Shown one piece after another: positions 7,813 to 29,578 of a stretch of 64,000 nucleotides of DNA. Each line of letters begins with the position of its first letter. The stretch's first letter is position 1. Source of the stretch: Hyalangium minutum (GTDB lineage: Bacteria > Myxococcota > Myxococcia > Myxococcales > Myxococcaceae). The notes below the pieces were generated by a model. The model saw only the letters and a list, made by a program, of their open reading frames with translations, made no database searches and had not been told where the DNA came from. Made by a program: the position numbers and the translations under genes. The stretch spans positions 173,596 through 237,595 of the forward strand of contig NZ_JMCB01000019.1 in assembly GCF_000737315.1 (NCBI RefSeq), read 5' to 3'.

Positions 7813-7828
7813 GATGAATGTGCTCACC
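7813..7828. promoter_or_regulatory. CRP/FNR-type box (single, weaker)
   Basis: GATGA-ATGTGC-TCACC; weak partner CGTGAC at 7793; about 108 nt upstream of the 7937 gene. Confidence 0.4.
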
Positions 7829-7936
7829 AGCCCTTGCAGGCTCTCCCCTGGGACGAGGTGCTGGCATGTCGGATGCAGAAGGACAGGGCATCACTTCACC
7901 TCACCGCCCGCGGTGACACCGTCCAGGAGAACTCCC

Positions 7937-9013
7937 ATGGCCCCCATCGGCTCCAAGCTGACCCGCGCTGCTCCCCTCTCCTCGGCCCCGGCCTCGTTCG
8001 AGCCCAAGCCGCTGACGCGTGCCAAGCCGCTGACGGAGGCCAAGCCGAAGGGCCCGGACGCCCTGAAGCACCCGGCCCTGCCCGATGGCGGTCCCAAGTA
8101 CAGCCCCCTCGTGCAGAACACGGGCGATGCCGGCGTCCTGATGGCGACCGGCGGCACCAACAAGCTCACCGCGCCGCTGAGCGCCGATCCGAAGAAGTAC
8201 CTCGACAAGCCGGGCACCACCCACCAGAAGGACGTCTTCGGCGGCACGGCGAAGGCCAGCCTCGGCTCGGCCTCGGCCTCCACCATCAACCACCGCGCGG
8301 GCGGTGTGATTCAGCACTCGGCCCAGGCCGAGATCAACGGGCCGAATGCCTCCTTCCAGGCCCAGAAGACGCACGCGGGCCGGCTGGGCATCACCAGCGC
8401 CCAGCTCACCGGCGAGGCCACCGCGTTCAAGGGGCAGGCGCAGGCGGGCATCCAGCTCGATAACAAGAACCACGCGTACACCGCCGCGCTGACGGGCCGG
8501 GCGGAGACGGGCGTGAACGTCACGGGCAGCCTCACGCATGACGTCAACCGGCACGTGGGCGGGTTCCTCAAGGGCGAGGCCAAGGCCGGAGCCGCCGCCT
8601 TCGCCGAGGCCGCCGCGTCGCTGAACCCGAAGGCCGGCACGGCGCTGCTCTCGGCCCAGGCGGGCGCGGGGGCCACCGCAGGCGTGTACGGCACGGCGGG
8701 TGGGCACCTGGGCCGGCTGCACGGCTCCGCCACCGCGGGCCTGGTCGCGGGCGCGGCGGCTCAGGCCGGTGGGAAGCTCGGTCTGGAGAATGGCTTCCTC
8801 CGCCAGTCGGCGCAGGTCAACGCCGCCGCGGGCGTGGGCACGCACCTCAAGACCGACGTCGCGCTCGACGTGCGCCATCACCTCAAGCCCAGCCTGGCCG
8901 AGGGCCTGCGCCCGGGCCTCGCTGCCGCGACGGGTGTGGGCTCGCCCGCGAGCGCGCTGCAGCCCGAGAAGTCGAAGCTCGAGAAGGCTCTCTCGAAGGC
9001 GTTTGGCGGCTGA
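7937..9013 (+). CDS. Gly/Ala-rich protein without signal peptide, candidate T6SS effector
   Basis: Strong GC3 bias; start MAPIGSK after AGGAGA; long run of A-x-A-x-G small-residue strands. Confidence 0.65.
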   Translation: MAPIGSKLTRAAPLSSAPASFEPKPLTRAKPLTEAKPKGPDALKHPALPDGGPKYSPLVQNTGDAGVLMATGGTNKLTAPLSADPKKYLDKPGTTHQKDVFGGTAKASLGSASASTINHRAGGVIQHSAQAEINGPNASFQAQKTHAGRLGITSAQLTGEATAFKGQAQAGIQLDNKNHAYTAALTGRAETGVNVTGSLTHDVNRHVGGFLKGEAKAGAAAFAEAAASLNPKAGTALLSAQAGAGATAGVYGTAGGHLGRLHGSATAGLVAGAAAQAGGKLGLENGFLRQSAQVNAAAGVGTHLKTDVALDVRHHLKPSLAEGLRPGLAAATGVGSPASALQPEKSKLEKALSKAFGG

Positions 9014-9041
9014 GCCACTTGCCACACAAGGGCGGCGCCGC

Positions 9042-9080
9042 AGTGAAGCGGCACACAGGTTTTCTATGAAGCCCTCCACA
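9042..9080. promoter_or_regulatory. Tandem CRP/FNR-type boxes
   Basis: AGTGA-AGCGGC-ACACA (9042) and TATGA-AGCCCT-CCACA (9065), 23 bp apart. Confidence 0.55.
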
Positions 9081-9114
9081 GCGGGTGCGGAGCCGCCTCG
9101 GCAGAGTGCGACGC

Positions 9115-10512
9115 ATGCACCTTCCCGCGTGGATCCGCGCCGCCGCCGTGGCGGGCTTCCTCAGTCACTCGGCCGCCTGGTCCCAGACGGCCCCCTCCGG
9201 CTTCGAGCTGGAGCGCCTGGAGCTCAACCTCGGTAAGGGCTCGCTCCTGTCCAGCCACGGCGAGCTGCTGGTCCCCACCGGCGTGAGCGCCGGGCTCGTC
9301 AGCCACTATGAGCACCTGCCGCTCGTGCTCCAGGACGGAGAGTCGCACCTGGAGCGGGTGCGGCACCGCGCCTCGCTCATGCTGGCGGCCAGCTACGGTG
9401 TGCTGCCGTGGCTCGAGGTGGGCGCGCAGATCCCCGCGGTGCTCTGGCAGCAAGGCGGGGATCCCAGCCTCCTGGGCCTGCCGCCGCTGACCGCGCGCGG
9501 GCTCGGGACGCCGATGCTCCAGGCCCGGCTGGGGCTGCTGTCGCGCCGCGAGGAGCACCCCGTGAACCTCGCGGTGGATCTCGCCGCGGGCCTACCTGTG
9601 GGGAGCGGCTCCGCGCTGGCGCGCGACGCGGGCCTGCGCTTCCGAGCCGGGGCCACGCTGGGGCTCGACTGGGGCTGGCTCCACCCCTCGCTCGAGGCGG
9701 GCGTGCTGCTGCGGCCGCCCAACCCCTTGTTCCGCAAAGGCTCGCCGCCCGTGGTCCCCGAGCTGCGCGTAAGCGCGGTGCTGGCCACGGCGAACCCGGG
9801 GCTTCGCGGCGAACTCGCCCTCCGGGGCGCCTTCGCGAGCGACGACAAGCAGCCCTCCCTGGAGCTGCTGGGCGGCGTGCGGTGGCCGCTGATGCCTCGG
9901 GTGGAGCTGCTCGCCCTGGGAGGCCCCGGCCTGGGCGCGGCGCCCGGAACGCCCTCCGCCCGCGTGCTGCTGGGGGTGAACTTCCTCATGGAGCCCCCGC
10001 CCGCATTGGAGCGGCTCACGGAGGCCATCCCTCACTTCACGCTGGAGCCGGAGGCCACCGCCGCACGCCGCGAGGTGCCCCGCCCGGCCGTGGCCCCCGT
10101 GCCCACGCGGGAGCTGCTCCCCACCGCAGTTCCGTTGGCCCACGCCACGCCCCTGCTGCAGGGCTCCGTGCTCTTCGAGCCGGGGCGGGCCGAGCTGCCC
10201 GCAGACCTCAGCCTGCCGCAGGCGGTGCTCGAGCTGCTGCGCTCGGAGCCCGGCAAGTCCATCGTCCTCCTCGAGGGGTACGCGGGCCAGGAGGACGCCG
10301 CGCAGGCCGATCGCCTCCTGCCCTTGAGGCGCGCGCAAGCGCTCCGGACCTACCTGGCGGGCCAGGGCGTGCCCTTGGAGCGCCTGCGGGTGCGAATCAC
10401 CAGCCCGGCCGCTTCCGCACACGCCCCCACGCCCGAGGACCTGGCGCGAGCGCGGCGGGTGGAGATGACCGTCCTGAGCGACCCCACCGCCGTCTCCGAG
10501 ACGACTCCCTGA
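9115..10512 (+). CDS. Outer-membrane beta-barrel plus OmpA-like C-terminal domain protein
   Basis: Signal peptide; GFELERLELN...barrel strands; C-terminal VLFEPGRAEL...LLEGYA...LPLRRAQALRTYL...RRVEM OmpA-like pattern. Confidence 0.8.
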   Translation: MHLPAWIRAAAVAGFLSHSAAWSQTAPSGFELERLELNLGKGSLLSSHGELLVPTGVSAGLVSHYEHLPLVLQDGESHLERVRHRASLMLAASYGVLPWLEVGAQIPAVLWQQGGDPSLLGLPPLTARGLGTPMLQARLGLLSRREEHPVNLAVDLAAGLPVGSGSALARDAGLRFRAGATLGLDWGWLHPSLEAGVLLRPPNPLFRKGSPPVVPELRVSAVLATANPGLRGELALRGAFASDDKQPSLELLGGVRWPLMPRVELLALGGPGLGAAPGTPSARVLLGVNFLMEPPPALERLTEAIPHFTLEPEATAARREVPRPAVAPVPTRELLPTAVPLAHATPLLQGSVLFEPGRAELPADLSLPQAVLELLRSEPGKSIVLLEGYAGQEDAAQADRLLPLRRAQALRTYLAGQGVPLERLRVRITSPAASAHAPTPEDLARARRVEMTVLSDPTAVSETTP

Positions 10513-10519
10513 GGCCGCC

Positions 10520-12205
10520 ATGTCCTTCGACTTCCACGCCATTCTCCAGCACGTCGAGGCAGCTGCCCCCACCGAGGGCCTCCCCGAGTGGCTCCCGCGA
10601 AGCTGGAGCGATCCGGAGGGCTTCGCCTCGGCGCTGGCCCCGGCGTACACGGGCCGCGGCGCGGCCTTCAAGAGCCGCACGGGCCAGCACCACGACTTCT
10701 TCCACGATCTCATCGTCCGGCACGCCACCACGGATCGCATCGCGCTGCGCACGTATGACCGGACGCGCGGCTGGCAGACGCTGAGCTACCGCCAACTGCA
10801 CGACCAGGCCCTCCGGCGGGCCGCAGCGTGGGAGCATCGAGGCGTCAAACCGGGAGCCCGGGTGTGCCTGATGTTCCACCCTGGCGCCGAGCTGTGGGTG
10901 AGCCTCGCCGCAGCGCTGGGGTTGGGAGCCTGCATCAGCCTGCTGCCGCCGGTGGGACAGCGCTTCGTCGCGCGCCGGCTCGCCGCGCTCGCACCGGGCC
11001 ACGTGGCCGCCGAGCCACACCAGGCGCCGCTGCTGGGCGCCTACGCCAAGTGCCTGCTGCCCACGACGGGGCCATCGGCGCCAGCGCTCGCCTCATACTC
11101 GTACAAGCCGGACGAGCCGGTGGGCCTGTTCTTCTCGCCTCTGGCGGCGCTCCCCTCCACCCCGGTGCCGCTCAAGGCGGGAGAGGCTTGGCTCGGCGCA
11201 CTGGTGGATGGGCTGCTCACCTTCGCGCTGGCGCCGGGAGATCACCTGACCGCTCCGGGCTTCCACCCACTCCAGCACCTGCCCGCGCTCATCTTCGCCA
11301 CGCTGCTGCGCGGAGCTACATTCCTCCACCTCGAGCCCTCGGATGTAGAGGAGCGCCCCAGCCTCCTGACCGAATACCCGGTGCGGGCGCTCGGGGTCAC
11401 CCCGGCCTTGAGGGACGTGCTGCTGCGGAGCCGGACGCCGCTGAAGAACGTAGGAGGCTGGTTCCGCAACCCCGAGGCCCCGCTCGACTGGCAGGCGTGG
11501 CGCGCGTGGGTGAAGCAGTGCGGGCTGGAGTCCGTGCCCTGCTCCAACGTGCTGGTGGATGCGGCCGCGGGAGGCGCAGTGCTTTGCTCGCTCCGGCGCG
11601 TGGGAGATGTCCACGCCGAGGCCGCTCCGGCGCCGGGCCGCCGCTGGGCCCTGGAGGCGCTCGACCGGAGTGGACAGCGGGCCGCAGGAGACTCGGGCGT
11701 CTTCACCCTTCTGCCCTCGGAGGGGCGGCCGCCAGGGCACGTCATCCTCTCCCGCCTCCGCCAGAAGTACCTCTACGGCGGGACGTGGGATGCGCGGCAC
11801 GAGGGCCGGGTCCCGCTCATGGCCGAGGTGACGGAGGCGCTGGCGGCCATGTCTCCGCCCTGTTCCACCTCGCTGCTCACCGTGCCGACGGGAGGCCTCT
11901 CGGGCGAGCTCCGCTCGATGTTGCTCGTCTTCACGGGCGCGCCCTCGCAGGGCGCGGCGCTGTCCCTGGCGGAGGTGCGCCGGTACCTCGAGCTGCAGCT
12001 TGGCGCCGAGCACGTACCAGAGCGGTTCGAGGTCTTCCCGCTCTACCCGAGGTTGAAAGAGGGCCAGGTGGACGCGGCGTGGTGCCACGCGCAGTACCTG
12101 ACGGGCGCGCTCTACCACAAAGCCCAGGAGCCGCTGTTCCAGACGCTCACGGAGCTGCGGGCCCAGGTGCGGCACGCCGCGCTCCCTTCCGAAACGAGGA
12201 GATGA
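10520..12205 (+). CDS. Degenerate AMP-binding (ANL-fold) protein in the T6SS operon
   Basis: LSYRQLHDQALRRAAAW...GVKPGARVCLM N-terminal pattern; the P-loop position reads FFSPLAALPSTP; the A10 motif reads LYPRLKEGQVD (Lys replaced by Gln). Confidence 0.7.
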   Translation: MSFDFHAILQHVEAAAPTEGLPEWLPRSWSDPEGFASALAPAYTGRGAAFKSRTGQHHDFFHDLIVRHATTDRIALRTYDRTRGWQTLSYRQLHDQALRRAAAWEHRGVKPGARVCLMFHPGAELWVSLAAALGLGACISLLPPVGQRFVARRLAALAPGHVAAEPHQAPLLGAYAKCLLPTTGPSAPALASYSYKPDEPVGLFFSPLAALPSTPVPLKAGEAWLGALVDGLLTFALAPGDHLTAPGFHPLQHLPALIFATLLRGATFLHLEPSDVEERPSLLTEYPVRALGVTPALRDVLLRSRTPLKNVGGWFRNPEAPLDWQAWRAWVKQCGLESVPCSNVLVDAAAGGAVLCSLRRVGDVHAEAAPAPGRRWALEALDRSGQRAAGDSGVFTLLPSEGRPPGHVILSRLRQKYLYGGTWDARHEGRVPLMAEVTEALAAMSPPCSTSLLTVPTGGLSGELRSMLLVFTGAPSQGAALSLAEVRRYLELQLGAEHVPERFEVFPLYPRLKEGQVDAAWCHAQYLTGALYHKAQEPLFQTLTELRAQVRHAALPSETRR

Positions 12206-12208
12206 CCG

Positions 12209-12595
12209 ATGGGAATCCAAGTCGTCACGGGAGCCATGCTCCAGTGCAGCTTCGGCGTGGCGCCCTCCAGCCTGGTGGTGCTCCCGGCGAACAAGGTGAT
12301 GGCGACCACTCCGGCCGCCAACATCATGGACAACAAGCCGCTGGTGAACATCCCCCCGTTCGGGATGTGCCAATCCATGGCAAATCCGATGGTGGCCGCA
12401 GCCACGGCGGCGGCGCTGGGCGTGCTCACCCCAATGCCTTGCATTCCGGCGACGGCGGCGCCGTGGGCACCCGGCTGTCCCAAGGTGATGATCGGCAACA
12501 TGCCGGCCTTGGACAGCTCCTCCAAGTGCATGTGCAACTGGGGCGGCGTCATCCAGATCGTCAACCCCGGCCAGACGGCGGTGCAAGATGGCTGA
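12209..12595 (+). CDS. DUF4280 PAAR-like spike-tip protein (IglG-like)
   Basis: GAMLQCSFG, NIPPFGMC, PCIP, W-x-PG, KCMCNWGGVIQI: the DUF4280 Cys pattern. Confidence 0.9.
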   Translation: MGIQVVTGAMLQCSFGVAPSSLVVLPANKVMATTPAANIMDNKPLVNIPPFGMCQSMANPMVAAATAAALGVLTPMPCIPATAAPWAPGCPKVMIGNMPALDSSSKCMCNWGGVIQIVNPGQTAVQDG

Positions 12596-13715
12596 GTCTC
12601 TGCATTCGCTCGCGGCGCTGGAGCGCGCGTTGAGCACGGCCTCTGCTCCTGTCTCCTCGCTGACGCCCGAGCAGGTGGAGGCGCGGGTGGATCGGGTCAC
12701 CGCGCTGATGGCCCGGAGCGCCTACGACGAGGCGGCGCGCGCCTCCGAGGCATTGCTCACCGAGGGACTCCGGGATGTGCGGCTGGTAACGCCGTGCCTC
12801 TTCGGTGCCTTCCTGGAGCGCGGCCCGCGCGCTCTGCCCGGGATCTTCTCCGCCCTGCACCGAGTCCTCACGCGGAGCTGGGAGCAGCTTGGCCCCAGCG
12901 ACAAGAAGCCAGTCGTGGCGGACAGTGGGCTGCTCTGGCTGTTCAAGTCGCTTCACAAGCACCTGGAGTTCCATGGGCGGGCCCAGGACGACGTGTGGCG
13001 CAAGTGGTGCGAAAGCTGCGAGGCGTCTGAGATTCAGGAAGCGCTCCAGCGCGCAAGTGAGCTGTTCGAGGCTCTTGAACAGCTCCTGCCCAAAGGAGGG
13101 GGTACTACCCGGCTGCTCCAGTTGACCGGCTGGCTGACGGAGAACCGCGAGCTCTTCTCGGAGACTCCAGCCCGCCCTGCGCGGGCCCAGGCTGAGGAGT
13201 CCCCCAGGGCGGCGGCCATCTCTGAGCGCTGGGAGGAGGCGCCTTCCGCCGATCCAGAGGAGGAGGCGGAAGATGAGGAGGACGAAGAGCAAGAAGAAGC
13301 CACCGAGGAGCAGGCACTTGAAGCCGAGGATGACTCCGAAGAGGAGATCCTCTTCGAGCCCGTGGCGGTCCCGCAGCCCCGCTTGCCGCCACAGCCTGGT
13401 CTGGAGCCCTCTCCGGCGCTCGAGCAACTGCTGCACAAGCTGACCGCATTCGATCAGCTCGTAGAGCGTCAGGACTTCTCGCGGGCCAGCATGATTGCCA
13501 CGGACGTGCTCCATGTGATCGACCACTTCGATCCGCTCGTCTATCTGCCCTCGCTCTTCACACGCTTCCTCTCGGGCCTGAGCGCGCATGCGGGGAGCAT
13601 CGAGCCACGGATGCAGAGCCCTCGCTCCTTGGGTGAGCGTGCCCTCGAGCGGCTCTACCGGACGGACTTGCAGGCGTTCTTGAACTCCTCCTCCGGTGTG
13701 GAGGACGCGCCATGA
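12588..13715 (+). CDS. IglI-family / TssA(ImpA_N)-like T6SS protein
   Basis: RDVRLVTPCLFGAFLERGPRALPGIFSALHRVLTRSWEQLGP resembles the ImpA N-terminal KDLR...G...L...W..L.P pattern; acidic linker; overlaps both neighbours. Confidence 0.65.
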   Translation: MAESLHSLAALERALSTASAPVSSLTPEQVEARVDRVTALMARSAYDEAARASEALLTEGLRDVRLVTPCLFGAFLERGPRALPGIFSALHRVLTRSWEQLGPSDKKPVVADSGLLWLFKSLHKHLEFHGRAQDDVWRKWCESCEASEIQEALQRASELFEALEQLLPKGGGTTRLLQLTGWLTENRELFSETPARPARAQAEESPRAAAISERWEEAPSADPEEEAEDEEDEEQEEATEEQALEAEDDSEEEILFEPVAVPQPRLPPQPGLEPSPALEQLLHKLTAFDQLVERQDFSRASMIATDVLHVIDHFDPLVYLPSLFTRFLSGLSAHAGSIEPRMQSPRSLGERALERLYRTDLQAFLNSSSGVEDAP

Positions 13716-14632
13716 GAGACCTCTCATTCGAGCAACGGCTGCGCGAGCGCATCCGCGGGTTCGACATGCCCGCTCTGCTGGTGCTGCTGAAACACAAAAA
13801 GTATGCGCTGGAGCTGATCGAATACCGGAGCCACCGCACGCTCGTGCATCAGAGCCACCTGGTGCATGACATCCAGTTCAGCGACGAGTCACCCAGCCGG
13901 GTGATCATCACGGTGAACATCGGGCTGCTCAGCGTGCAGTCTCCTCTGCCCACCTTCCTGCATCAGACAATGAATCAGCTGGATCCGCTGGAGAGCGAGC
14001 GGATGGAACGTTTCCTGGGCTATTTCGACCACGAACTGCTCCGGGCGCGCTTCGCGGGGCTCTACCCTGAACGAAGCGCCTCGCTGCTTCCCGGCTGGGA
14101 GGAAGCGGCGCAGAACCGATTGAGCTTATTGAGCCTCACCAGCCCGAGCACGCTGCACTGGCTGTTCGCCCAAGTCTTCCCAGAGGCCGAAGTGTCCGTA
14201 CGGCGTGAGGTGCGCACTCAGGCCGTGCCAGCCCACGGCTCGCAGCTCGGTGTCACGGCATTGGGAGACTCCACGGCGTTGGGGGGCTTCGCCTCTGTGC
14301 CCACGGGCGGCATGGAAGTAACGGTCTTCTTCAATGAAAGTCATTGCGGAATAGGAACACCGTGGGCCATGGAAGCTCCGCTGCGCCTTTCCCATAGGCT
14401 CCTCCCTGTCTTCTCCCAGAGCTCGGCGCCACTCACCGCGTGGATGGTGTTGCGCGATCCGAGCGGTCCAGCCCGCCTCCAGCCAGACAACTACCTCGGC
14501 TATGTCCCGCTGGCGGGCACTGAGAACCTTCATCAACGTCTCTTGCTCTTCCGCGGCAACCTCGCGCATCCAACCCCAGACACGTCTAGCGGCCAGATAC
14601 CCAGCGTTTCGACCGAGCAGAGAGTGGCTTGA
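13712..14632 (+). CDS. tssG: TssG-like baseplate protein (IglJ position)
   Basis: ITVNIGLLSVQSPLP...FLGYFDHELL resembles the TssG V.FLGL.G..SPLP...DFLD.F.HRL pattern. Confidence 0.65.
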   Translation: MRDLSFEQRLRERIRGFDMPALLVLLKHKKYALELIEYRSHRTLVHQSHLVHDIQFSDESPSRVIITVNIGLLSVQSPLPTFLHQTMNQLDPLESERMERFLGYFDHELLRARFAGLYPERSASLLPGWEEAAQNRLSLLSLTSPSTLHWLFAQVFPEAEVSVRREVRTQAVPAHGSQLGVTALGDSTALGGFASVPTGGMEVTVFFNESHCGIGTPWAMEAPLRLSHRLLPVFSQSSAPLTAWMVLRDPSGPARLQPDNYLGYVPLAGTENLHQRLLLFRGNLAHPTPDTSSGQIPSVSTEQRVA

Positions 14633-14667
14633 CCCACTCCTGCCAAGTACCTCCAAGGGAGCCAACC

Positions 14668-15858
14668 ATGTCAAAAGTTCAATTCATCGGCTATCAACTC
14701 CAAACAGCGGCCAATGGAACATCGAACGCACTCAGCAAGCGCGTGAACTACCCAGGCCTCGCGAATGGCCGCGATGACATCAGGGCTCGATGCATGGTGC
14801 TGGCCGACGCCATCATCGCAGCGCGAATGCATCCAGCCATCGACACCAGCGCCAAGAAGATCTTTGCCGCACCAGAGTTCTTCTTCCGTGGCGGTTCGGC
14901 CGGCGTCTACAACATCGAAGATGTCTCGTACATCAACGAGTTCCTGGACACGTTCCTCGCCAAGCCGCACTACAAGAAGTGGACGTTCGTGCTTGGCACT
15001 GCACTCGCTGCGATGCCCGAGGAGAACTCCAAGACCGAGATTCTCAATATCTCCCTCGTGCGCAATGGCGGCGTGCGCGTCACCGGCAAAACGGATGCCA
15101 GCGAGCAGGACGCTCTCGCGCATGGCAGTAGCGACTCGCGGCTGATTTACAAGGAATACGTCTCCGCCATCGATTTCCTCGGGCCGAACTTCGGGCGAGG
15201 CGATTTGTTCCATGACGATCCGGCCCAGGGTGGACGCGCACATATCCGTGGCAAGCCCAAGACCCTCATGCCTACGTCGGGAGCGCGACCCACGGGCAAA
15301 TACATGCGCCACCGGAACAGTGCGAACGAGCACGGCCGGACTCGCACCTGGAAGCCCTCGGGGCACCTGCAGGGTGAGATCTATGGAGAGTTTCTACACG
15401 GACGAATCAAGACGCTCCCGGAGCTGAATCGGCGGCTCCGCCCCACCACGTACAAGACCAGCGAGCGCAGCAGGACGGGGCTCGGCGGCGGTATCGACTT
15501 CCAGATGAGTGGAATGCGCTTCGCGCTCGAGATCTGTCTGGATCACGCTCAGCAGCGCGCCGCAGAAGCTGTCCATTCGGACGTGGACGTGCACCTCGTC
15601 ACATCCTGCGGAATGACTCCCCGGTATTCGTGCTGCAAGAGCAGAGGCTTCCTGTTCCATGTCGACGGCATCACCGACGATGCAGCAAGGGTCTGGGCCT
15701 ACAAACGGACAAGCAGCGGCCACCTTCAGATGCGGCCGCAGACATCGTTGGACATGACCCACCCTTCACGCTGGCTCAACTCGACGACCGACGCGACGAA
15801 TCTCTTCGAGGCGGGCAAGGGCTCCGTCGTCATCTTCCGCGCCGACGCTCTTCCCTGA
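14668..15858 (+). CDS. Nitrilase / carbon-nitrogen hydrolase-fold protein, candidate effector
   Basis: KIFAAPEFFF (Glu), LIYKEYVS (Lys), FALEICLDHA (Cys); start after AGGGAG; visibly AT-richer codons. Confidence 0.6.
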   Translation: MSKVQFIGYQLQTAANGTSNALSKRVNYPGLANGRDDIRARCMVLADAIIAARMHPAIDTSAKKIFAAPEFFFRGGSAGVYNIEDVSYINEFLDTFLAKPHYKKWTFVLGTALAAMPEENSKTEILNISLVRNGGVRVTGKTDASEQDALAHGSSDSRLIYKEYVSAIDFLGPNFGRGDLFHDDPAQGGRAHIRGKPKTLMPTSGARPTGKYMRHRNSANEHGRTRTWKPSGHLQGEIYGEFLHGRIKTLPELNRRLRPTTYKTSERSRTGLGGGIDFQMSGMRFALEICLDHAQQRAAEAVHSDVDVHLVTSCGMTPRYSCCKSRGFLFHVDGITDDAARVWAYKRTSSGHLQMRPQTSLDMTHPSRWLNSTTDATNLFEAGKGSVVIFRADALP

Positions 15859-15882: not shown

Positions 15883-15921
15883 TGTGACGCACTTCACTCG
15901 CGTCCCGTGAGCGCGCTCACA
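15883..15921. promoter_or_regulatory. Tandem CRP/FNR-type boxes upstream of tssB
   Basis: TGTGA-CGCACT-TCACT (15883) and CGTGA-GCGCGC-TCACA (15906), 23 bp apart. Confidence 0.7.
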
Positions 15922-16006
15922 GCGCCTCCGGGGCATTTCCCACAGATTACGCAGCACCCGGGAGCCACCCGGCCTCCGGTCATCCCAGACAGAAAGAGAG
16001 AGCGCC

Positions 16007-16540
16007 TTGCCCATCCAAGACAAACTTCCCACGTCCCGCATCACCCTCACCTACCGCACCACCATCAACGGGCAGGAGGAAGAGGTTGACCTCCCCTTCC
16101 GCATGCTCGTCCTCGGCGACCTCTCCCTCGGCTCGTCCAAGGACCGCAAGGTGGATCTCGACGAGCGCAAGCTGCGCTCCGTCAAGCCCGGCGGTCTGGA
16201 TGACCTGATGAAGGACATGGACATGTCCATCGAGTTCCAGGTCCCCGACAAGACCACCTCCAGCGGCGAGGGCACGATGAACGTGAAGCTGCCCATCGAG
16301 CGCATGAAGTCCTTCCATCCGGACGAGTTCGTCCAGCACGTGCCCAAGCTCAAGGCCCTGCTCATCCTCCGCAAGCTGCTGCTCGAGATGCAGGCCGACA
16401 TCGACAACCGCAAGGAGCTCTGGCGCACGCTCTCCGAGCTCTACGCCCACCCGGAGCAGATCCAGCAGCTGCTCGAGAGCGACGCGCTCAAGGGCTTCGA
16501 GAACCTCCGCCTGCCCCCCGGCGAAGCGGCCGGCAACTGA
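16007..16540 (+). CDS. tssB: T6SS contractile sheath small subunit TssB (VipA/IglA)
   Basis: SRITLTYRT...DLPFRMLVLGDLS...KSFHPDEFVQHVPKLKALL. Confidence 0.95.
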   Translation: MPIQDKLPTSRITLTYRTTINGQEEEVDLPFRMLVLGDLSLGSSKDRKVDLDERKLRSVKPGGLDDLMKDMDMSIEFQVPDKTTSSGEGTMNVKLPIERMKSFHPDEFVQHVPKLKALLILRKLLLEMQADIDNRKELWRTLSELYAHPEQIQQLLESDALKGFENLRLPPGEAAGN

Positions 16541-16582
16541 GTTCCCCTCCACCCCCTGTCACCCCACAAGGAAACACCCACC

Positions 16583-18076: not shown

Positions 18077-18118
18077 TCCCCAATCCCTCTTTCCCAATCC
18101 CTTTCACGAGAGAACACC

Positions 18119-19987: not shown

Positions 19988-19988
19988 C

Positions 19989-20369: not shown

Positions 20370-20370
20370 C

Positions 20371-22014: not shown

Positions 22015-22026
22015 GAGCGGCACGCC

Positions 22027-22626
22027 ATGGCGAAGCTCATCTGCACCATCGATCTGGACAAGGAGAAGGGCCTCACCGTCACGGTCGAGGATCCCGAGGG
22101 CAAGCTCACCCAGACGGTGATGCTGGATGGCAAGGCCATCACCCTGGAGGTGAAGAGCGACTCGGACACGAGCACCATCGTCCAGAAGGCAGACAGCATC
22201 AGCGTCACCTGCAAGGCCTTCAGCGTGGAGGCCGACACCATCACCTTGAAGTCCAAGAAGGAGTCGGCGTGGACGAGCGACGAGACGCTGGAGCTCAAGA
22301 GCACGAAGGACATGGCGCTCACCTCCAGCGCGAAGCTGACGCAGAAGGCCTCGAAGGACGCGGTCCTCTCCTCCAACGCCAACCTGGAGCTGAAGGCCAC
22401 GCAGAAGCTCACGCTCGAGGGAATGGAGGGCCAGGTGTCCGCCACCGGAGGGCCGCTCAAGCTGGAGGGAGTGAAGCTGGAGCTGAAGGGCAAATCCCAG
22501 GCGGAGCTGGGAGCCCCGCTCATCAAGGTGGCGGCACAGGGACAGCTGGGACTCGAGTCCTCGGGGATCGCGGAGCTGAAGGGCTCGATGACCAGCGTAA
22601 GCGGCTCGCTCGTGAAGCTGGGGTGA
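22027..22626 (+). CDS. vgrG: Stand-alone short VgrG/gp5-type beta-helix spike
   Basis: Ser/Thr/Lys-rich short beta-strand repeats ending ELKGSMTSVSGSLVKLG. Confidence 0.75.
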   Translation: MAKLICTIDLDKEKGLTVTVEDPEGKLTQTVMLDGKAITLEVKSDSDTSTIVQKADSISVTCKAFSVEADTITLKSKKESAWTSDETLELKSTKDMALTSSAKLTQKASKDAVLSSNANLELKATQKLTLEGMEGQVSATGGPLKLEGVKLELKGKSQAELGAPLIKVAAQGQLGLESSGIAELKGSMTSVSGSLVKLG

Positions 22627-22644
22627 GCGGACCGCCCTCGCTCC

Positions 22645-22683
22645 TGTGACGCAGTTCACACGCTTCCTATGGGGGCCCTCACA
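22645..22683. promoter_or_regulatory. Tandem CRP/FNR-type boxes upstream of tssF
   Basis: Perfect TGTGA-CGCAGT-TCACA (22645) and TATGG-GGGCCC-TCACA (22668), 23 bp apart. Confidence 0.7.
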
Positions 22684-22760
22684 GCCCCTTCGGTGAAGAA
22701 CGCTCAGAGTACGCGGCATCCGGGACGCCCACCGCCCCGGGTGAACGGATGGGATTTGCC

Positions 22761-24407
22761 ATGGCTGAAACGAATCAGCTCTATCAGGACTACCTCGCGG
22801 AGCTGGCGGCGCTCGAGCGCTTCCGCCAGGGCTTCCGCCACACCTACCCCGGCGTTCCCCTGGAGCAGGAGGACCCGGATGTGCGCCGGCTGGTGGAGGC
22901 CCTGGCCTTCTTCTCCGTGCAGACGCGGCACGCCACGCTGCGCAACCTCCGCTCCACGTGGCTGCGATTGTTCTCCAGCTTCTTCCACTGCCTGCTGGAG
23001 CCACTGCCTGCCACGGGCCTGGTGCAGGCGGCTCCCACGGAGAAGATGGTGGAGGCGGCAGTGCTGCCCCGAGGCACCGAGCTGAGCCTGCGGCCCGTGG
23101 GCGGCGAGGCGGGCTCCTTCCGCCTCGAGCGGGACCTGCGGGTGCTGCCCATCTTCCTGGAGGAGACGCAGGTGCTGAGCCTGGCGGATGGCGGCCACCG
23201 CCTCATCCTCCGCTTCGCCGCGGCCTTCCCTCGGAGGGATCCGGTGGAGGTGCTCAGCCTCCACGTGCGCCACCTGGAGGAGTACGGCAGTTCCCTGGCG
23301 GTGTACCACGCGCTCCGCAAGCATCTGCAGCAGGTGCGCGTGGTGTATGACGCGAAGGCGGATGAGCGCTCCGCGGGGCAGCTATGCGAGCACTCCTTCG
23401 GGCCGACGCCGTTCGCGCCCGATGACGCGAGCCTCTACGCCAACCCCCTGCAGCGCGCGCGCTCCTTCTTCCAGCTCCCGGAGCAGGGGCTCTTCCTGCA
23501 CATCCGGGTGGCGCCCACGCGGCAGGCCTGGAACCGCTTCAGCCTGTGCCTGGACTTGAAGAAGGAGTGGTCCGTGGGCCGCTCGCGCCACCCGGACTTC
23601 CTGCGCCCCTTCGTCGCGCCCGTCGTCAACCTCAAGGCCGCGCCCGCACAACCCATCACCCTGGATGGCACCCGCACCGAGCACCCGCTGTTGGGGCTGC
23701 GCAACGGCCATGGCTTCCGTCTGCACTCGGTGACGGGCGTCTACGTGCAGGGCTCCCGAGGCCGCGAGCCCATGCGTCCCGCCCACGTGCCTGGGCCCGG
23801 CCCCTCCTACGAACTGGACGAGCAGCTGGCCGCGGATGGCAACCCCTTGCACCAGCTGCTGGTGCAGATGCCGGAGGCCTTCCTCGAGCCGCGCAAGCTG
23901 CACGTGGACGCGCTCTGGTACCAGCCCCACTTCGCCACCGAGGCGATGGGCCGCCTCGAGGCCTCGACGCCCAGCCTCCACGTGGAGGGACTGCGGTGGC
24001 GCGTGCTGGGGGACGTGCAGCCGCCTCGCGAGAGCCCCCTGCGCCAGGACGTGCCCGCGCTGACGCGGCTGCTCTCGTGGAAGGTCCGCCCCACCCTGGA
24101 GCGGGACGAGCTGGCCGCCCTCCTGTCCTATCTGGGCACGTTCCAGGAGAGCGCCTTCGGCCCCATCCTCCCGCTGTTGCGCGCGCTGAGGTGCTCCGTG
24201 CTGCCGGATGGCGCGCTGCGCGGCACGGGGCTGCGGCACGTGTACGAGGCGCGGCTCGCGCCCTTCGACGCCAGCCAAGAGGCCCTCGTCGCCTGCTTCC
24301 TCGAGCAGGTGCTGGCCCTGCTGGACGCATGGAACGGCGAGGCCTCCGTGGAGCTGCGGCCCTCGGTGGACGGCGCTGGAGCTTTCAACCCCTGGGGAAC
24401 GCCATGA
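22761..24407 (+). CDS. tssF: TssF-like baseplate protein (IglH-like)
   Basis: YQDYLAELAALERFRQGF...EDPDVRRLVEALAFF; PFVAPVVNL. Confidence 0.85.
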   Translation: MAETNQLYQDYLAELAALERFRQGFRHTYPGVPLEQEDPDVRRLVEALAFFSVQTRHATLRNLRSTWLRLFSSFFHCLLEPLPATGLVQAAPTEKMVEAAVLPRGTELSLRPVGGEAGSFRLERDLRVLPIFLEETQVLSLADGGHRLILRFAAAFPRRDPVEVLSLHVRHLEEYGSSLAVYHALRKHLQQVRVVYDAKADERSAGQLCEHSFGPTPFAPDDASLYANPLQRARSFFQLPEQGLFLHIRVAPTRQAWNRFSLCLDLKKEWSVGRSRHPDFLRPFVAPVVNLKAAPAQPITLDGTRTEHPLLGLRNGHGFRLHSVTGVYVQGSRGREPMRPAHVPGPGPSYELDEQLAADGNPLHQLLVQMPEAFLEPRKLHVDALWYQPHFATEAMGRLEASTPSLHVEGLRWRVLGDVQPPRESPLRQDVPALTRLLSWKVRPTLERDELAALLSYLGTFQESAFGPILPLLRALRCSVLPDGALRGTGLRHVYEARLAPFDASQEALVACFLEQVLALLDAWNGEASVELRPSVDGAGAFNPWGTP

Positions 24408-25045
24408 ACCTGGAACATTGGAAGATCGTCTTCGCGCAGTACCGGCAGACGCGCGCGCTGTTGGACCAATGGCTGCCGGCCGAGACCTCGCGAAGCGAGG
24501 AGCGCACCCAGGTCCTCGTAGGACGCGCGGGGCTGGCGCAGTTGCAGCAGCAGTTACTGGTGGCGCTGGACGGCCTGCGCTCGGGGCTGGGCAGCCACTA
24601 CCGCTCCGAGGAGGTGGACGACGCGCTGCGGCCCTTCATCTATCTGCTAGATGAGCGGGTGCTGCTGCGCCTGGCCGAGGCCGAGCAGTACGACTGGCCC
24701 CCGCTGCAGCGCCACCTCCGCGGCGAGGAGGGCGGTGGAGACCTGTTCTTCGAGCTGGCGGACCAGAAGCTGAACCAGCCAGGAGCCTCGCCGCTGGTGT
24801 TCGAGCTGCTGCACTTCTGCCTCACCGCGGGCTTCGGCGGCCGCTACCTGGGCAACACGGCGAAGCTGCGTGAGTACAAGCAGCGGCTGGGGGCCCGCAT
24901 CGTCACCCCCGAACCCGCGCCTGCCGCGCCTCCCGCAGCCACGAACGCGCGGCCCCTGCTCTACGAGTTCCCCGCCCGCTACTACGCCGGCGCCTGCCTC
25001 TGCTTCCTGGGGCTGCAGGGCCTGCTGTGGTGGCTCTCCAACTGA
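24404..25045 (+). CDS. tssL: DotU/TssL membrane protein
   Basis: PFIYLLDERVL...LQRHLRGEEGGGDLFFE...LHFCLTAGFGGRY; C-terminal TM helix; ATGA overlap with tssF. Confidence 0.9.
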   Translation: MNLEHWKIVFAQYRQTRALLDQWLPAETSRSEERTQVLVGRAGLAQLQQQLLVALDGLRSGLGSHYRSEEVDDALRPFIYLLDERVLLRLAEAEQYDWPPLQRHLRGEEGGGDLFFELADQKLNQPGASPLVFELLHFCLTAGFGGRYLGNTAKLREYKQRLGARIVTPEPAPAAPPAATNARPLLYEFPARYYAGACLCFLGLQGLLWWLSN

Positions 25046-25054
25046 GGCGCCGCC

Positions 25055-25381
25055 ATGACTGCATCCCTTGCGAGAACAGGCAGTGAGCGCGCCTCCGTCC
25101 CGGCGGCCCCCGCGCTGCTGGAGCGCCTGGAGCGGCTCATCGACACGGAGCTGGGCCCCCTGCGAGCAGGCGTCGAGCCGCTGCTGGTGGACCTGCGCCA
25201 GGGCCTGGCAGCGCTCTTCCCGGGACCTGGAGGACAGCAGCTCTCGCCCCAGCAGCAGCAAGAGCAGCGCACCCGGCTCGACCAGGTGCTGGACACACTC
25301 GAAGACATTCTGGAGGCGCTGCAGCGCACCGCACGTGCGCAGCGCCGCACGGGCCCCACGGTGGGCCGGAGAGAGAGCTGA
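25055..25381 (+). CDS. Small helical hypothetical protein between tssL and tssM
   Basis: 108 aa with Leu/Glu heptads; 9 nt after tssL and 3 nt before tssM. Confidence 0.6.
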   Translation: MTASLARTGSERASVPAAPALLERLERLIDTELGPLRAGVEPLLVDLRQGLAALFPGPGGQQLSPQQQQEQRTRLDQVLDTLEDILEALQRTARAQRRTGPTVGRRES

Positions 25382-25384
25382 ATC

Positions 25385-28300
25385 ATGGAAAAGCTTCGCG
25401 AACTCGGGTCTCACGTGAGCCCCTACCAGGGCTGGCTGTTCCTCGCGCTGGGCGTGCTGCTCCTGGTGGCCGCCGTGGTGGCGCTCGCGGTGTGGATGCG
25501 CCGGCGGCGGCAGCGGGGCGCCACCTCCCTGGGGGCTCCGCCTCCCATGCCGGCCCAGCGGCTGCGGAAGATCCGCCAGGACTTCCTCAAGGCGCTGCCG
25601 TGGCTGCAGCGCGCCGCCGTGAGAGATCTACCGTGCGCGGTGGTGCTCGGCCCGGCGGGCAGCGGCAAGTCGAAGCTCATCGCCCTGGACGTGGACTGGC
25701 AGCGGCAGTCGCGCCAGTTCCTCCCCAGCCACACGAGCGACTCGCTGCTGAAGCTCTACCTTGGGCCCGACTCGGTGGTGCAGGAATTGTCGGCGCCGCT
25801 GACCGAGGACGACACGCCGCAGGCCCGCCGGTCGCTGCGCAAGCTGTGGAAGGACGCCTTTGGCCAGGGCCAGCATGCGCTCGCGGTCCTCGCGCTGGAC
25901 GTGCGCTGGCTGGCGGAGACCCCGCCCGACGAGGTGCGGCGCACAGCGCAGTTGCTGCGCGGCAAGCTCAACCTGCTGGCCGAGGTACGCAGACTCCCGG
26001 TGGAGACGCGCCTGTGCCTGACGCACATGGACACGCTGGAGGGCTTCGAGGACTTCGCCGAGCTGCTCCGCACCCACCATGTACCGCTCTCCTTCGCGCT
26101 GCCGCCTCGAGGCGAGGAGGGCCAGGTGGCCTCCCTCCTCCAGGCCCAGGAGCAGTACCTGGCGCTGGGGCTGACCTCGCTGCCGGTGGAATCCTTCGAA
26201 CGGCTGGAGCGCTTCTACTCCCAGGGCCACCGCCCCTTCGAGGCCCTGGCCCGCTTCACCACCGCGCTGCTCGAGGGTGGGACGCTGGCCTTCGTTCCCA
26301 AGCTGTCCCGGGTGTACCTCTCCTCGCCGTCGGCCCGCGCCTCGGGCGTGCTCTCCGTGCCCTCCGAGGCGCATGACGCCCAGACGCTGCGTCAGCGCTA
26401 CCTGCGCACGCACCTGAAGCGCGGCGCGATGCTGGCCACGGCCTGCAGCCTGCCCATGCTGGCCGCCTACGCGCACTTCTCCTGGCGGTTGTCGCAGGCC
26501 CAGGAGAATGTGGGGCGCTTCGAGAGCACGGTCCAGCGCATGCGCGACCAGGGCCAGGAGGTGTCTGGCAGCGTGGTGCAGGATCAGGTGCTCGCCGCGC
26601 GCCAGGCCATGGACGTGATGTGGCGGGCCACCGGCTACTGGCCGCTGCTGCCTTACAGCTTCTCCCAGGCCCGCGAGAACCTGACCAAGCGGCTGACCCA
26701 GGGCATCCGCGAGGCCCACCTGCGTCCCGCCCTCGAGCACTGCCAGAAGCAGCCGGACACGTGCCGCCCCGAGCAGGTCGTCTTCCTGCTGGCCGCCCTG
26801 CATGCCTCGAGCAGTGAGCCGCTCGGTCAGTTCGTCCTCTCCAGCCTGCGCAACCGGAGTGCGTGGAGCGTCTCCGGCAAGGAGGCACAGGAGACGGCCT
26901 CCACCACCGAGGCGCCCAACCTCGAGTCCACGCGCTCGTGGCTCACCGCCATCCATCTGGTGGAGTCCCTGGTGGGGCCCTACGTCACCCTCAGCGACAA
27001 GCCCTGGCAGGCCCCCACCACGCCAGAAGCGGACTGGGCGCGCTGGCCCTTCCGCGAGGCCTTCACGCTGGAGGGCCAGCTGGCTCCCTGGCAGGCCCAC
27101 TTCAAGCGGCTGGAGGACTTCCTGCAAGCGCAGGCGGTGGAGCCCTGGGAGCTGGACCGGATGAACAAGGAGCTGGAGGCGCTGCAGGAGGAGCGGCTGC
27201 AGCTCCAGGCGTGGCTGGAGGACAGCGCCATCTTTGCCGCCCTGCCGCGCGCGCTCGACCTGATCAAGGCCTCCGAGGCCCGCGTGGACACCAGCCGCTT
27301 CAAGGGCCTGTCCTCCACGCTCCAGTCCGTGGAGTGGATGAACAAACACCGCGAGGTGCTCGCCTCCCTGCTGCACATGGAGGAGGAGGCCTATACGGGC
27401 CTCAAGGCAGTGCAGAAGATGAGCGTGGCCGAGCTGCTCGTGCGTGGCGGAGTGTGGCAGCCGGGCCCCTCCAGCAAGGGCCCTCTCCAGCTGACCATCA
27501 CCCAGGGCCCCCTCGAGTTCCACCCGGCGGATAACTCGCGCCAGATTCACCGGGCCATCCTCCGCTACTACGAGCGTACGGGCCGCCTGCCCTTCGCCTC
27601 GGCGCGCGGTGAGGGGGAGGGCTCCTCTCCGTCCACCACCAGCCTGCCCGAGGAGCGGCTGAAGTTCGACACCCGCATCCGCCCGCTGGTGGACGAGTTC
27701 ACCCAGTTGCTCAAGAGCGCCGACCTGCCCGCGGAGGAGATCTCCCAGCGCCAGGAGCACGTCCGCCGCCAGGTGGATCTGTTCTCGATCCGGTACCGCC
27801 AGCGGCTCTACCAGCGCGTGAACGCCTACCGCCTCGACGCGCTCACCCCCGCCCTGCTCACCGAGGAGCTGTCGCGCCTCACCCAGCCCTCCTCGGAGCT
27901 GGTGGACATGCTGCGCGACGTGGCCAAGGGAGCCTCCCTCGAGCCGCTCGAGGGCCCCTACTACGAGTCCCTGCGCAACTCGGTGGCCACCTTCAAGCCC
28001 ATCGTGCAGGTGATGAAGCCCGACGAGAGCGGCAACTACGCTCTCCTCAATCCCTACCGGGCCCTGGTGGCGCAGCTGTCGGACGAGCTGCTGGCCGTCT
28101 CCCGCGGGGGAGCCCGGGCCGCATCCACCGCTCCGGCCTCCGGTGGCGAGGGAGGCAGCGCGGCCCGGCTCACGGAGATGCTCACACCCATGGGGCGCAT
28201 TGCCCTCTCGATGATGCTGGAGGCGGACGACTCGTATCTCCGCAAGGTGGATGCATGGCTGGACCAGCAGGGCTTCATCGGCGAGCTGCGTGAGCCCTTC

Positions 28301-29062
28301 CGGCAGCCGTTCCTGGCGGTGCGGAAGCTGGGGCAACAGGAGCTCGAGCAACTCCTGCAGGAGCAGTGGGAGACGGCCTCGGGCCGCATGCTGCACCCGT
28401 TGATGAGCCGGTACCCGTTCAACCCGCGGGCCACGCAAGAAGTGGAGCCGGGCGAGCTGGAGATCCTGCGCCGCCAGGATGGCGTGTTCTGGAGTTTCGT
28501 GAACCGGATCATCGCGCCCGTCAGCGAGGAGCGCGGCACAGACTGGGTGCTGCGAGGCGCCCTGCGGGATCGGCTCCGCCTGCCCGAGGAGCTGCTCCCC
28601 ACGCTCAGCCGGCTCTCGCGCCTGTCCCGCGCGCTCTGGGATGGGGAGGGCCGCGCACGTCCTCTGATGCTGCAGGTGATGCCGCTGCCGCTGCCACCCG
28701 CGCCCAAGGCGGACAGCTTCGTGACGCTGGGCTCGCTCAAGTGCGGCAGGACCGCGGCGCTGGCCTACAACCAGAGCCCTTCATGGCAGGCGTTCCCGGT
28801 CGACTGGTGGGATCAGCAGACCGCCTCGCTGGTGGTGGAGCTGCGCTCGCCCGAGCAGCAGGCCATCCAATACACCACGCTGCAGCAGCCGCGCTCGGCC
28901 TGGAGCTGCTTCCGCCTGCTCGAGGATTCGCTGCCCACGGGTGACCAGCAGCGGCTGTGGCGGATGCGGGGCCGCAGCTCGGAGACCGCGCAGCAGACGA
29001 TGGAGATCCGCTTCGGTCTCAAGGGAGAGCCCTGGACCCTTTTCCGTGAGGTGCAACCATGA
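25385..29062 (+). CDS. tssM: TssM/IcmF-like membrane complex protein (PdpB-like)
   Basis: N-terminal TM helix; Walker A VVLGPAGSGKSKLI; CLTHMDTLEGFEDF; second TM helix; C-terminal LMSRYPFNP and YNQSPSWQAFPVDW. Confidence 0.85.
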   Translation: MEKLRELGSHVSPYQGWLFLALGVLLLVAAVVALAVWMRRRRQRGATSLGAPPPMPAQRLRKIRQDFLKALPWLQRAAVRDLPCAVVLGPAGSGKSKLIALDVDWQRQSRQFLPSHTSDSLLKLYLGPDSVVQELSAPLTEDDTPQARRSLRKLWKDAFGQGQHALAVLALDVRWLAETPPDEVRRTAQLLRGKLNLLAEVRRLPVETRLCLTHMDTLEGFEDFAELLRTHHVPLSFALPPRGEEGQVASLLQAQEQYLALGLTSLPVESFERLERFYSQGHRPFEALARFTTALLEGGTLAFVPKLSRVYLSSPSARASGVLSVPSEAHDAQTLRQRYLRTHLKRGAMLATACSLPMLAAYAHFSWRLSQAQENVGRFESTVQRMRDQGQEVSGSVVQDQVLAARQAMDVMWRATGYWPLLPYSFSQARENLTKRLTQGIREAHLRPALEHCQKQPDTCRPEQVVFLLAALHASSSEPLGQFVLSSLRNRSAWSVSGKEAQETASTTEAPNLESTRSWLTAIHLVESLVGPYVTLSDKPWQAPTTPEADWARWPFREAFTLEGQLAPWQAHFKRLEDFLQAQAVEPWELDRMNKELEALQEERLQLQAWLEDSAIFAALPRALDLIKASEARVDTSRFKGLSSTLQSVEWMNKHREVLASLLHMEEEAYTGLKAVQKMSVAELLVRGGVWQPGPSSKGPLQLTITQGPLEFHPADNSRQIHRAILRYYERTGRLPFASARGEGEGSSPSTTSLPEERLKFDTRIRPLVDEFTQLLKSADLPAEEISQRQEHVRRQVDLFSIRYRQRLYQRVNAYRLDALTPALLTEELSRLTQPSSELVDMLRDVAKGASLEPLEGPYYESLRNSVATFKPIVQVMKPDESGNYALLNPYRALVAQLSDELLAVSRGGARAASTAPASGGEGGSAARLTEMLTPMGRIALSMMLEADDSYLRKVDAWLDQQGFIGELREPFRQPFLAVRKLGQQELEQLLQEQWETASGRMLHPLMSRYPFNPRATQEVEPGELEILRRQDGVFWSFVNRIIAPVSEERGTDWVLRGALRDRLRLPEELLPTLSRLSRLSRALWDGEGRARPLMLQVMPLPLPPAPKADSFVTLGSLKCGRTAALAYNQSPSWQAFPVDWWDQQTASLVVELRSPEQQAIQYTTLQQPRSAWSCFRLLEDSLPTGDQQRLWRMRGRSSETAQQTMEIRFGLKGEPWTLFREVQP

Positions 29063-29520
29063 AACGCCTGTTCCTGTTCTGCTCCACCCTGCTGCTGCCG
29101 CTCGTCGCCTGCCAACCGGCCACCCTGCAACTGAGCATCAAGGCTCCCTCGGGAACCAACCAGGGCCGGCCGCTCTACATGCTGGTGCGCAAGGTGGACC
29201 CGAAGCAGTACGCCACCGAGTCCTACGATGACGTCTCCGCCCGTGCCTTCCAGCCAGACGCGAGCGTCCTCCACAAGGAGATCATCTATCCGGGCACGCT
29301 GCGGCGCATCCCGGTGAAGATCCCCGAGGACTCTTCCCTGGCAGTGTCATTCCTCTTCACCGCTCCAGATGGGAACTGGCAGTCCTTCTTGAACATGCCC
29401 GTTCCCCAGGACCTGGATGTCGAGCTGCAGGAGAGCCGCATCCTGTCGGGAGGTTCTGCCGCGCCGCCCCCGGCTGAAGCGGCGGCCTCCCCCGCAGCTC
29501 CCACGCCGTCCAAGTCCTGA
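29059..29520 (+). CDS. tssJ: TssJ/IglE-like outer-membrane lipoprotein
   Basis: Lipobox PLVAC; LQLSIKAPSGTNQGRPLYMLV; ATGA overlap with tssM. Confidence 0.7.
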   Translation: MKRLFLFCSTLLLPLVACQPATLQLSIKAPSGTNQGRPLYMLVRKVDPKQYATESYDDVSARAFQPDASVLHKEIIYPGTLRRIPVKIPEDSSLAVSFLFTAPDGNWQSFLNMPVPQDLDVELQESRILSGGSAAPPPAEAAASPAAPTPSKS

Positions 29521-29539
29521 CGCCGCCACGACCGAAGCG

Positions 29540-29578
29540 AGTGAATCCCTTCACAGCCCCTGAATGAAGGGCCTCACA
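29540..29578. promoter_or_regulatory. Tandem CRP/FNR-type boxes upstream of the giant Ig-repeat gene
   Basis: AGTGA-ATCCCT-TCACA (29540) and AATGA-AGGGCC-TCACA (29563), 23 bp apart. Confidence 0.7.

Follow-up and report, generated by a model that had tools for sequence, protein, structure and literature searches.

Paired CRP-type boxes at a fixed 23-bp spacing precede each unit of a type VI secretion locus in Hyalangium minutum

CRP-binding sites and class II CRP-dependent promoters are already known, as are adjacent tandem CRP sites, found at whiB1 of Mycobacterium tuberculosis, and the control of a type VI secretion system (T6SS) by CRP, found in Vibrio cholerae. In class II CRP/FNR promoters, such as galP1 of Escherichia coli and the NtcA-activated promoters of cyanobacteria, the 16-bp regulator site takes the place of the -35 element and ends 21 nt before a -10 element of which only A2 and T6 are kept, and its centre lies at about -41.5, the class II position defined for CRP (PMC2844151). 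We describe here a sequence arrangement that fits this geometry at a T6SS locus of the myxobacterium Hyalangium minutum, within a stretch of 64 kb (contig NZ_JMCB01000019.1, positions 173,596 to 237,595 of the forward strand; hereafter the window, in which position 1 is the first letter). Unlike in these promoters, the promoter-proximal site at this locus is always accompanied by a second full site directly adjacent to it, 23 bp away from centre to centre. In the literature we found no account of T6SS transcription in myxobacteria, of a promoter motif for these systems, or of a link between them and CRP.

Every position of the window was scored against the palindrome TGTGA-N6-TCACA, and four pairs of boxes were found on the + strand. 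They lie before an OmpA-like gene (ompA; box 1 at 9042-9057, AGTGAAGCGGCACACA, and box 2 at 9065-9080, TATGAAGCCCTCCACA), before tssB (box 1 at 15883-15898, TGTGACGCACTTCACT, and box 2 at 15906-15921, CGTGAGCGCGCTCACA), before tssF (box 1 at 22645-22660, TGTGACGCAGTTCACA, a perfect palindrome scoring 10/10, and box 2 at 22668-22683, TATGGGGGCCCTCACA) and before a giant gene with immunoglobulin-like (Ig) repeats (box 1 at 29540-29555, AGTGAATCCCTTCACA, and box 2 at 29563-29578, AATGAAGGGCCTCACA). The start-to-start spacing is 23 bp in all four pairs, and GCG or GCC directly follows each box 2. All eight boxes score 8-10/10, with G4 and C13 present in 8/8. Within the module, conservation is highest in the promoter-proximal half of box 2; the outer half of this box is often degenerate (TATGA or TATGG), and G2 is replaced by A there in three of the four box 2 sites of the window. 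The start codon follows the end of box 2 by 34 nt at ompA, 85 nt at tssB, 65 nt at tssF and 79 nt at the Ig gene. Rescoring thus bore out most of what a preliminary description of this DNA had said of the pairs, namely their coordinates, the 23-bp spacing, the GC(C/G) after box 2, the perfect box at 22645, the distances to these four genes and the CRP/FNR-type character of the palindrome.

Single boxes are not enriched in the window, which holds 14 sites scoring at least 8/10 against 16 ± 4 in first-order Markov simulations; eight of these 14 make up the four pairs, and all sites scoring at least 9/10 lie inside the modules. Pairs at 23 bp, on the other hand, are strongly enriched, with four observed against a mean of 0.005 and a maximum of 1 in 200 simulations; 23 bp is the only spacing that recurs. 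A 66-nt pattern composed of box 1, box 2, GC and a downstream hexamer (see below) matched four times in the window and in none of 100 shuffles. The pairing of the boxes is not due to chance, and the double motif is not common at random sites of the window. We also considered and rejected two other readings of the repeated segments. An RNA element was dismissed because Rfam gave no family match between 7000 and 36000 and because the half-sites hold the same bases, with no covariation; a repeat or mobile element was dismissed because the spacers and linkers vary between modules, only the tssB and tssF regions being alike over a longer stretch. These two promoter regions (15878-15980 and 22640-22742) share 73% identity over 103 nt, and their likeness runs beyond the -10 hexamer into a common ACGCnGCAyCCGGGA, which could represent a shared 5' leader or a promoter duplication.

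Alignment of the four regions revealed a further shared feature that the preliminary description had not contained, a -10-like hexamer lying exactly 21 nt past the TCACA of box 2. With this hexamer included, the modules span, on the + strand, 9042..9107 (CAGAGT at 9102-9107), 15883..15948 (CAGATT at 15943-15948), 22645..22710 (CAGAGT at 22705-22710) and 29540..29605 (GAGGGT at 29600-29605). A2 and T6 of the hexamer, the two key positions of a -10 element, are invariant, and the distance to box 2 is 21 nt in 11 of the 12 T6SS-linked modules collected here and 20 nt in the other. When the hexamer is placed at -12 to -7, simple arithmetic puts the centre of box 2 at -41.5 and that of box 1 at about -64.5. 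At ompA, an in-frame ATG (9115) sits 7 nt past the hexamer, and the annotated starts in Pyxidicoccus fallax (locus L025, 3389) and in a metagenome locus (L006, 2551) have the same offset. On the strength of this 7-nt offset in three genomes we predict a leaderless ompA mRNA, in which case box 2 would be centred at -42.5 and box 1 at -65.5. The geometry therefore suggests a class II CRP/FNR register, with centres at about -41.5/-42.5 (box 2) and about -64.5/-65.5 (box 1).

More ordinary promoters were also sought. A consensus scan found no sigma70-type consensus promoter between 7000 and 26900, and the four gaps contain no -35 element, their best -35/-10 combinations scoring only 6-7/12. Sigma54 promoters are common at T6SS loci; in these gaps, the best matches to the sigma54 consensus (TGGCAC-N5-TTGCW, with GG and GC 10 nt apart) reach 6-7/11.

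The four modules occupy the sole four intergenic gaps longer than 100 bp between 9 and 35 kb on the map of open reading frames (ORFs), and they delimit the four transcription units of the T6SS locus, all of them on the + strand. Unit 1 (9115..15858) holds, according to Pfam, OmpA-like, AMP-binding-like, DUF4280 (PAAR-like), unknown, TssG-like and unknown genes; its gene-to-gene gaps are shorter than 10 nt and its last gene extends over 14629-15858. Pfam likewise assigns tssB, tssC, a 190-amino-acid (aa) gene, tssK, tssE, a 547-aa gene and a 199-aa gene to unit 2 (16007..22626), and tssF, dotU, a 108-aa gene, an IcmF-like tssM and an IglE_N lipoprotein gene to unit 3 (22749..29520), the Pfam matches of TssF, TssG and TssM being weak. 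Unit 4 (29658..35003), defined by Pfam and synteny, encodes a 1781-aa lipoprotein with ASH/HYDIN-type Ig repeats.

To compare related loci, we used one genome-contig scan, in which P. fallax was the sole genome locus returned, together with homologs of TssB and IglE. Loci L001 and L025 both come from P. fallax and L002 and L027 from one JGI contig; L002/L027, L006 and L026 are metagenome loci. The P. fallax locus, whose TssK is 84% identical to that of the window, carries modules before ompA, tssB and tssF, with the 23-bp spacing in 3/3 and CAGAGT or CACATT at 21 nt. Its tssB module (L001 7166-7231) is the ortholog of module 2, and the tssF modules at L001 13915 and L002 6560 are orthologs of module 3. 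L002/L027 carries modules before tssF and the Ig gene, L026 before the Ig gene and L006 before ompA. When the ompA regions are aligned, they are conserved from box 1 onward, although the upstream neighbour genes are unrelated. The double motif is thus conserved in the orthologous loci of P. fallax, L002/L027, L006 and L026, without being universal. P. fallax also has a reverse-oriented module (L001 7116-7154, equivalent to L025 9832-9870), with CAGAAT at 20 nt, which stands back to back with the tssB module and faces a divergent 253-aa gene without a Pfam match.

The module is absent from L005 (TssB 83% identical), from L007 (72%) and from Archangium gephyra and Cystobacter fuscus (67-68%). 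Its presence in close relatives and its absence from these four loci indicate that the code is lineage-specific. In A. gephyra and C. fuscus, tssB has an ordinary promoter in place of the module, TTGACC-N17 followed by TAGACT or TAAAGT. Across these loci the module occurs exactly where a -35 element is missing, and where there is a good -35 there are no boxes. Since related genera use ordinary sigma70-like promoters for the same T6SS, we regard the locus as a clear case of recent regulon rewiring.

The giant Ig gene deserves separate mention, because it is not a core T6SS gene and the preliminary description had tied it to the system through its boxes. The full module precedes it in the window, L026 and L027, that is, in three of the four related genomes, with CAGGTT or CAAGGT 21 nt past box 2 in the latter two (modules at L026 5082 and L027 10489). 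The gene adjoins the T6SS in P. fallax, and it lies elsewhere within the cluster in Archangium and Cystobacter. Module and synteny together support the link of the Ig gene to the T6SS. A different site is seen before the P. fallax gene, where a perfect palindrome (TGTCATGCCCATGACA, L001 20837-20852) of the type TGTY-N8-RACA, as recognized by the regulator MrpC, replaces the double box.

The module is also found away from T6SS genes. In one scan of metagenome contigs, the 66-nt pattern matched 14 contigs, against about 1 expected by chance by our own estimate, and none of the 14 adjoins a homolog of the T6SS proteins of the window. G2 of box 2 is present in 14/14 of these matches, though the pattern left that position free, and most instances have full palindromes in both boxes. 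The genes 3' of these modules encode DoxX, secreted thioredoxin-like, subtilase, DUF305, Kelch lipoprotein, haem-oxygenase-like and YCII proteins. This variety of downstream genes implies that the module is a general promoter type rather than one specific to the T6SS. The preliminary description had proposed that one CRP-family regulator, binding as tandem dimers, controls the whole locus. Paired boxes before every unit, their conservation and the class II geometry all agree with this proposal, which has to be qualified in that the module is neither universal among related loci nor restricted to the T6SS.

As to the regulator, no CRP/FNR gene was found in the window, either by Pfam on about 50 ORFs or by tblastn with E. 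coli CRP. A candidate emerged from one metagenome contig (L008), in which the module is followed by a DoxX gene and then by a gene for a 226-aa CRP/FNR protein. Homologs of this protein, 65-73% identical, occur in Archangium, Corallococcus, Cystobacter, Stigmatella, Hyalangium and Pyxidicoccus xibeiensis, and it is conserved across the Cystobacterineae. Its gene lies beside FHA-GAF-cyclase or kinase-receiver-cyclase genes in three genera (L022, L023 and L024). In Corallococcus a 23-bp pair (9/10 and 10/10) is situated about 80 nt upstream of the crp ortholog itself; in P. xibeiensis a 9/10 box beside the crp gene is joined by a degenerate partner at +23, and a second such box (9/10) precedes the adjacent gene for a cyclic nucleotide monophosphate (cNMP)-binding protein. 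A 9/10 box is likewise found before a cNMP-binding gene in A. gephyra. Extra cNMP-binding proteins flank the 226-aa CRP gene in L022, L023 and L024 as well, an organization that resembles a conserved cNMP signalling island.

Among PDB entries, the best full-length relatives of the 226-aa protein are M. tuberculosis CRP (Rv3676) and GlxR of Corynebacterium glutamicum (E about 4e-33). Its recognition helix reads R-E-S-T-N-K, compared with R-E-T-V-N-K in M. tuberculosis CRP and R-E-T-V-G-R in E. coli CRP; the helix is TRESTNKWL in P. xibeiensis, Archangium and Stigmatella, and TRESVNKWL in Corallococcus. The R and E of this helix contact the G bases of TGTGA (PMC10187061). The 226-aa cNMP-binding CRP is the most likely regulator of the modules. 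In the window itself, a hybrid histidine kinase gene (Reg_prop/Y_Y_Y) stands next to a DUF5939-adenylate/guanylate cyclase gene (48576-50003) on the - strand (44883-50003), and this pair, about 10-15 kb from the T6SS locus, may be a source of cNMP; the cyclase gene is separated from the end of the locus by about 13 kb.

Taken together, we propose as reasonably probable that class II CRP/FNR-type, activator-dependent promoters with two adjacent dimers drive all four units. A CRP-family dimer reading TGTGA-N6-TCACA would occupy box 2 and stand in for the missing -35 element, while a second dimer would bind box 1, directly adjacent and 23 bp upstream. Because the outer half of box 2 is degenerate, we infer that the box 1 dimer helps to load box 2 cooperatively. 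The dimer on box 2 would in turn recruit RNA polymerase to the weak -10 (CAGAGT), so that its role would be activation rather than repression. If the 226-aa CRP is the regulator, a cyclic AMP or cyclic GMP signal would jointly turn on every T6SS unit and the giant Ig lipoprotein.

A number of points weigh against this proposal. In E. coli, a dimer at about -64.5 would fill the docking place that the RNA polymerase alpha subunit's C-terminal domain (alpha-CTD) takes at class II promoters, and at PwhiB1 of M. tuberculosis, where CRP sites also stand in adjacent tandem, the proximal one is repressive (PMC2844151). The conservation of TCACAGC exceeds the need of a CRP half-site. L005 lacks the module despite the 83% identity of its TssB, the P. 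fallax Ig gene lacks it too, and the Corallococcus crp pair has no A2/T6 hexamer at 21 nt. The CRP gene is not inside the window, the candidate being known here from relatives, and several CRP/FNR paralogues exist in myxobacteria.

The PwhiB1 precedent bears most directly on the chief alternative, one that we consider unlikely, a biphasic or repressive switch in which box 1 (about -65) would activate in class I fashion and occupancy of box 2 would shut the promoter. Box 2 would be filled at higher levels of regulator or cNMP, displacing alpha-CTD and sigma, and the T6SS would be expressed only at intermediate signal, or else the pair would be a pure operator. Like the present boxes, the CRP (Rv3676) sites of PwhiB1, at -58.5 and -37.5, are adjacent, and the weaker of the two is the proximal one; its effect is repression, that of the distal site activation, and filling of the distal site aids occupancy of the proximal (PMC2844151). 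The candidate regulator is closest to M. tuberculosis CRP, of the type of Rv3676 among its PDB relatives, the outer half of box 2 is weaker than box 1, and a dimer at about -65 leaves alpha-CTD little room. However, the PwhiB1 sites are 21 bp rather than 23 bp apart, and that promoter has its own -35 and an extended -10 besides its repressing proximal site (PMC2844151), whereas the promoters described here have no -35. Relative to the -10, their box 2 keeps the exact class II, that is, activating, register, no part of the module is better conserved than the promoter-proximal half of this box, and the same module serves four units within a single locus.

The other alternatives concern what reads the module. 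It is rather unlikely, in our estimation, that the reader is a dimeric or tetrameric protein other than the 226-aa CRP, either a CRP/FNR paralogue or an unrelated helix-turn-helix protein with a CRP-like operator. Such a reader would fit the lack of a regulator gene inside the window and the many CRP/FNR paralogues generally known in myxobacteria, and the 226-aa CRP is tied to the modules by one metagenome operon and by boxes beside its orthologs; yet half-sites of exactly TGTGA/TCACA are separated by 6 bp, the matching R-E-x-x-N-K helix is present in the candidate, and the crp gene itself has a 23-bp pair in Corallococcus. Very unlikely is the notion that an alternative sigma factor of the extracytoplasmic function (ECF) type reads TCACAGC as its -35 and CAGAGT as its -10 element, the palindromy being secondary. 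TCACAGC and the hexamer are indeed the most invariant parts of the module, but 19-21 nt separate the two elements, against the 16-18 nt typical of sigma70-family promoters, and box 1, the left half of box 2 and the fixed 23-bp register would be left unexplained. Both boxes are full palindromes in the metagenome instances. Finally, the preliminary description had included MrpC, the developmental CRP-like regulator of Myxococcus, among the possible readers. MrpC belongs to the CRP family, and in outline its motif is similar to the CRP consensus (PMC4320627), but the motif obtained by chromatin immunoprecipitation sequencing, TGTYN8RACA, needs Y4 and R13 (PMC4320627) and so clashes with the G4 and C13 of all eight window boxes. 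The MrpC-type palindrome TGTCATGCCCATGACA, which the P. fallax Ig gene has upstream instead of the double box, further indicates that the two site types are distinguishable. We therefore set MrpC aside as a highly improbable reader of the boxes.

A second non-core gene, the Gly/Ala-rich gene 7937, had also been assigned to the T6SS in the preliminary description, by way of a single box at 7813..7828 on the + strand (GATGAATGTGCTCACC). The box exists, but it scores 7/10 and is at chance level, 103 sites of the window scoring that high. Neither a partner at 23 bp nor a -10-like hexamer 21 nt downstream accompanies it, and it is not part of the system. A sigma54-like promoter, TGGCATGTCGGATGCA, lies at 7862..7877 on the + strand, 60 nt before the ATG of gene 7937, and is the only match to TGGCAY-N5-WTGCW in the window. 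It is likely that this sequence is the sigma54 promoter of gene 7937, apart from the CRP code. Neither P. fallax, which has an Mrp antiporter operon there, nor L006 carries the gene at this position. We rejected gene 7937 as a member of the regulon on account of its chance-level box, its lack of synteny and its own sigma54-like promoter, and its proposed link to the T6SS is not supported.

The T6SS itself (9115-29520) is of an unusual type, with an IglE_N lipoprotein, DotU, a weakly matching IcmF-like TssM and an OmpA-like gene. A conserved 561-aa AMP-binding-like protein is also encoded within it, and the scanned ORFs showed no ClpV-like ATPase. Just upstream (5931-7376) is a gene pair for a DUF2380 lipoprotein and a Gmx_para_CXXCG protein, both from myxobacterial paralogous families, and a large pAdhesive_15/disintegrin-like protein is encoded on the - strand at 2849-5464. 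Near the related T6SS loci the cargo varies: L006 has an OTT_1508-type deaminase gene (8789-9847) before tssB, and L027 has an RHS/YD-shell toxin with transposases (18949-20468) downstream of the T6SS locus.

The locus offers a compact and testable model, with four units, one 66-bp module and one candidate regulator that lies beside cyclases in related genera, and the module ties a giant Ig-repeat lipoprotein of unknown role to a T6SS. A broader picture, which we put forward tentatively and hold to be doubtful, is that the double box (23 bp, TCACAGC, 21 nt and a weak -10) could define a promoter class of its own that is widespread among GC-rich soil bacteria and to which a cNMP-sensing CRP binds as a dimer of dimers. 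One lineage of the Myxococcaceae might then have rewired a whole ClpV-less, IglE-containing T6SS, together with the giant Ig lipoprotein, into this regulon, and cNMP from neighbouring FHA-GAF or kinase-linked cyclases might gate contact-dependent killing in a social predator.

Set against known systems, the module is a lineage-specific variant of a known promoter type. The 23-bp double box in class II register and its reuse at every T6SS unit appear to be new, as do its recent gain by one myxobacterial lineage and its tie to a cyclase-associated CRP; our literature searches turned up no account of any of the four. The invariant 23-bp adjacency in this register is unusual, and it raises the mechanistic question of alpha-CTD placement and cooperative binding. 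In the class III promoters of E. coli, the second site lies at -74.5 or further upstream, unlike the 23 bp seen here. Closer in layout is the phage lambda cI repressor at OR1 and OR2, where two dimers sit side by side about 24 bp apart, with cooperative binding, and the proximal one, which overlaps the -35 (about -42), activates PRM. Cooperative activation from OR1/OR2 has been reported (PMC1874639). The analogy is a functional one, for adjacent dimers only, the protein family and the operator sequence being unrelated. Among secretion systems, the T6SS of V. cholerae would resemble the present one in its CRP-family regulator, which is needed there for T6SS (Hcp) expression; its hcp promoters, however, are sigma54-dependent and the CRP effect is exerted largely via quorum sensing (PMC2726435), whereas the H. 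minutum locus has its own tandem CRP boxes at every unit.

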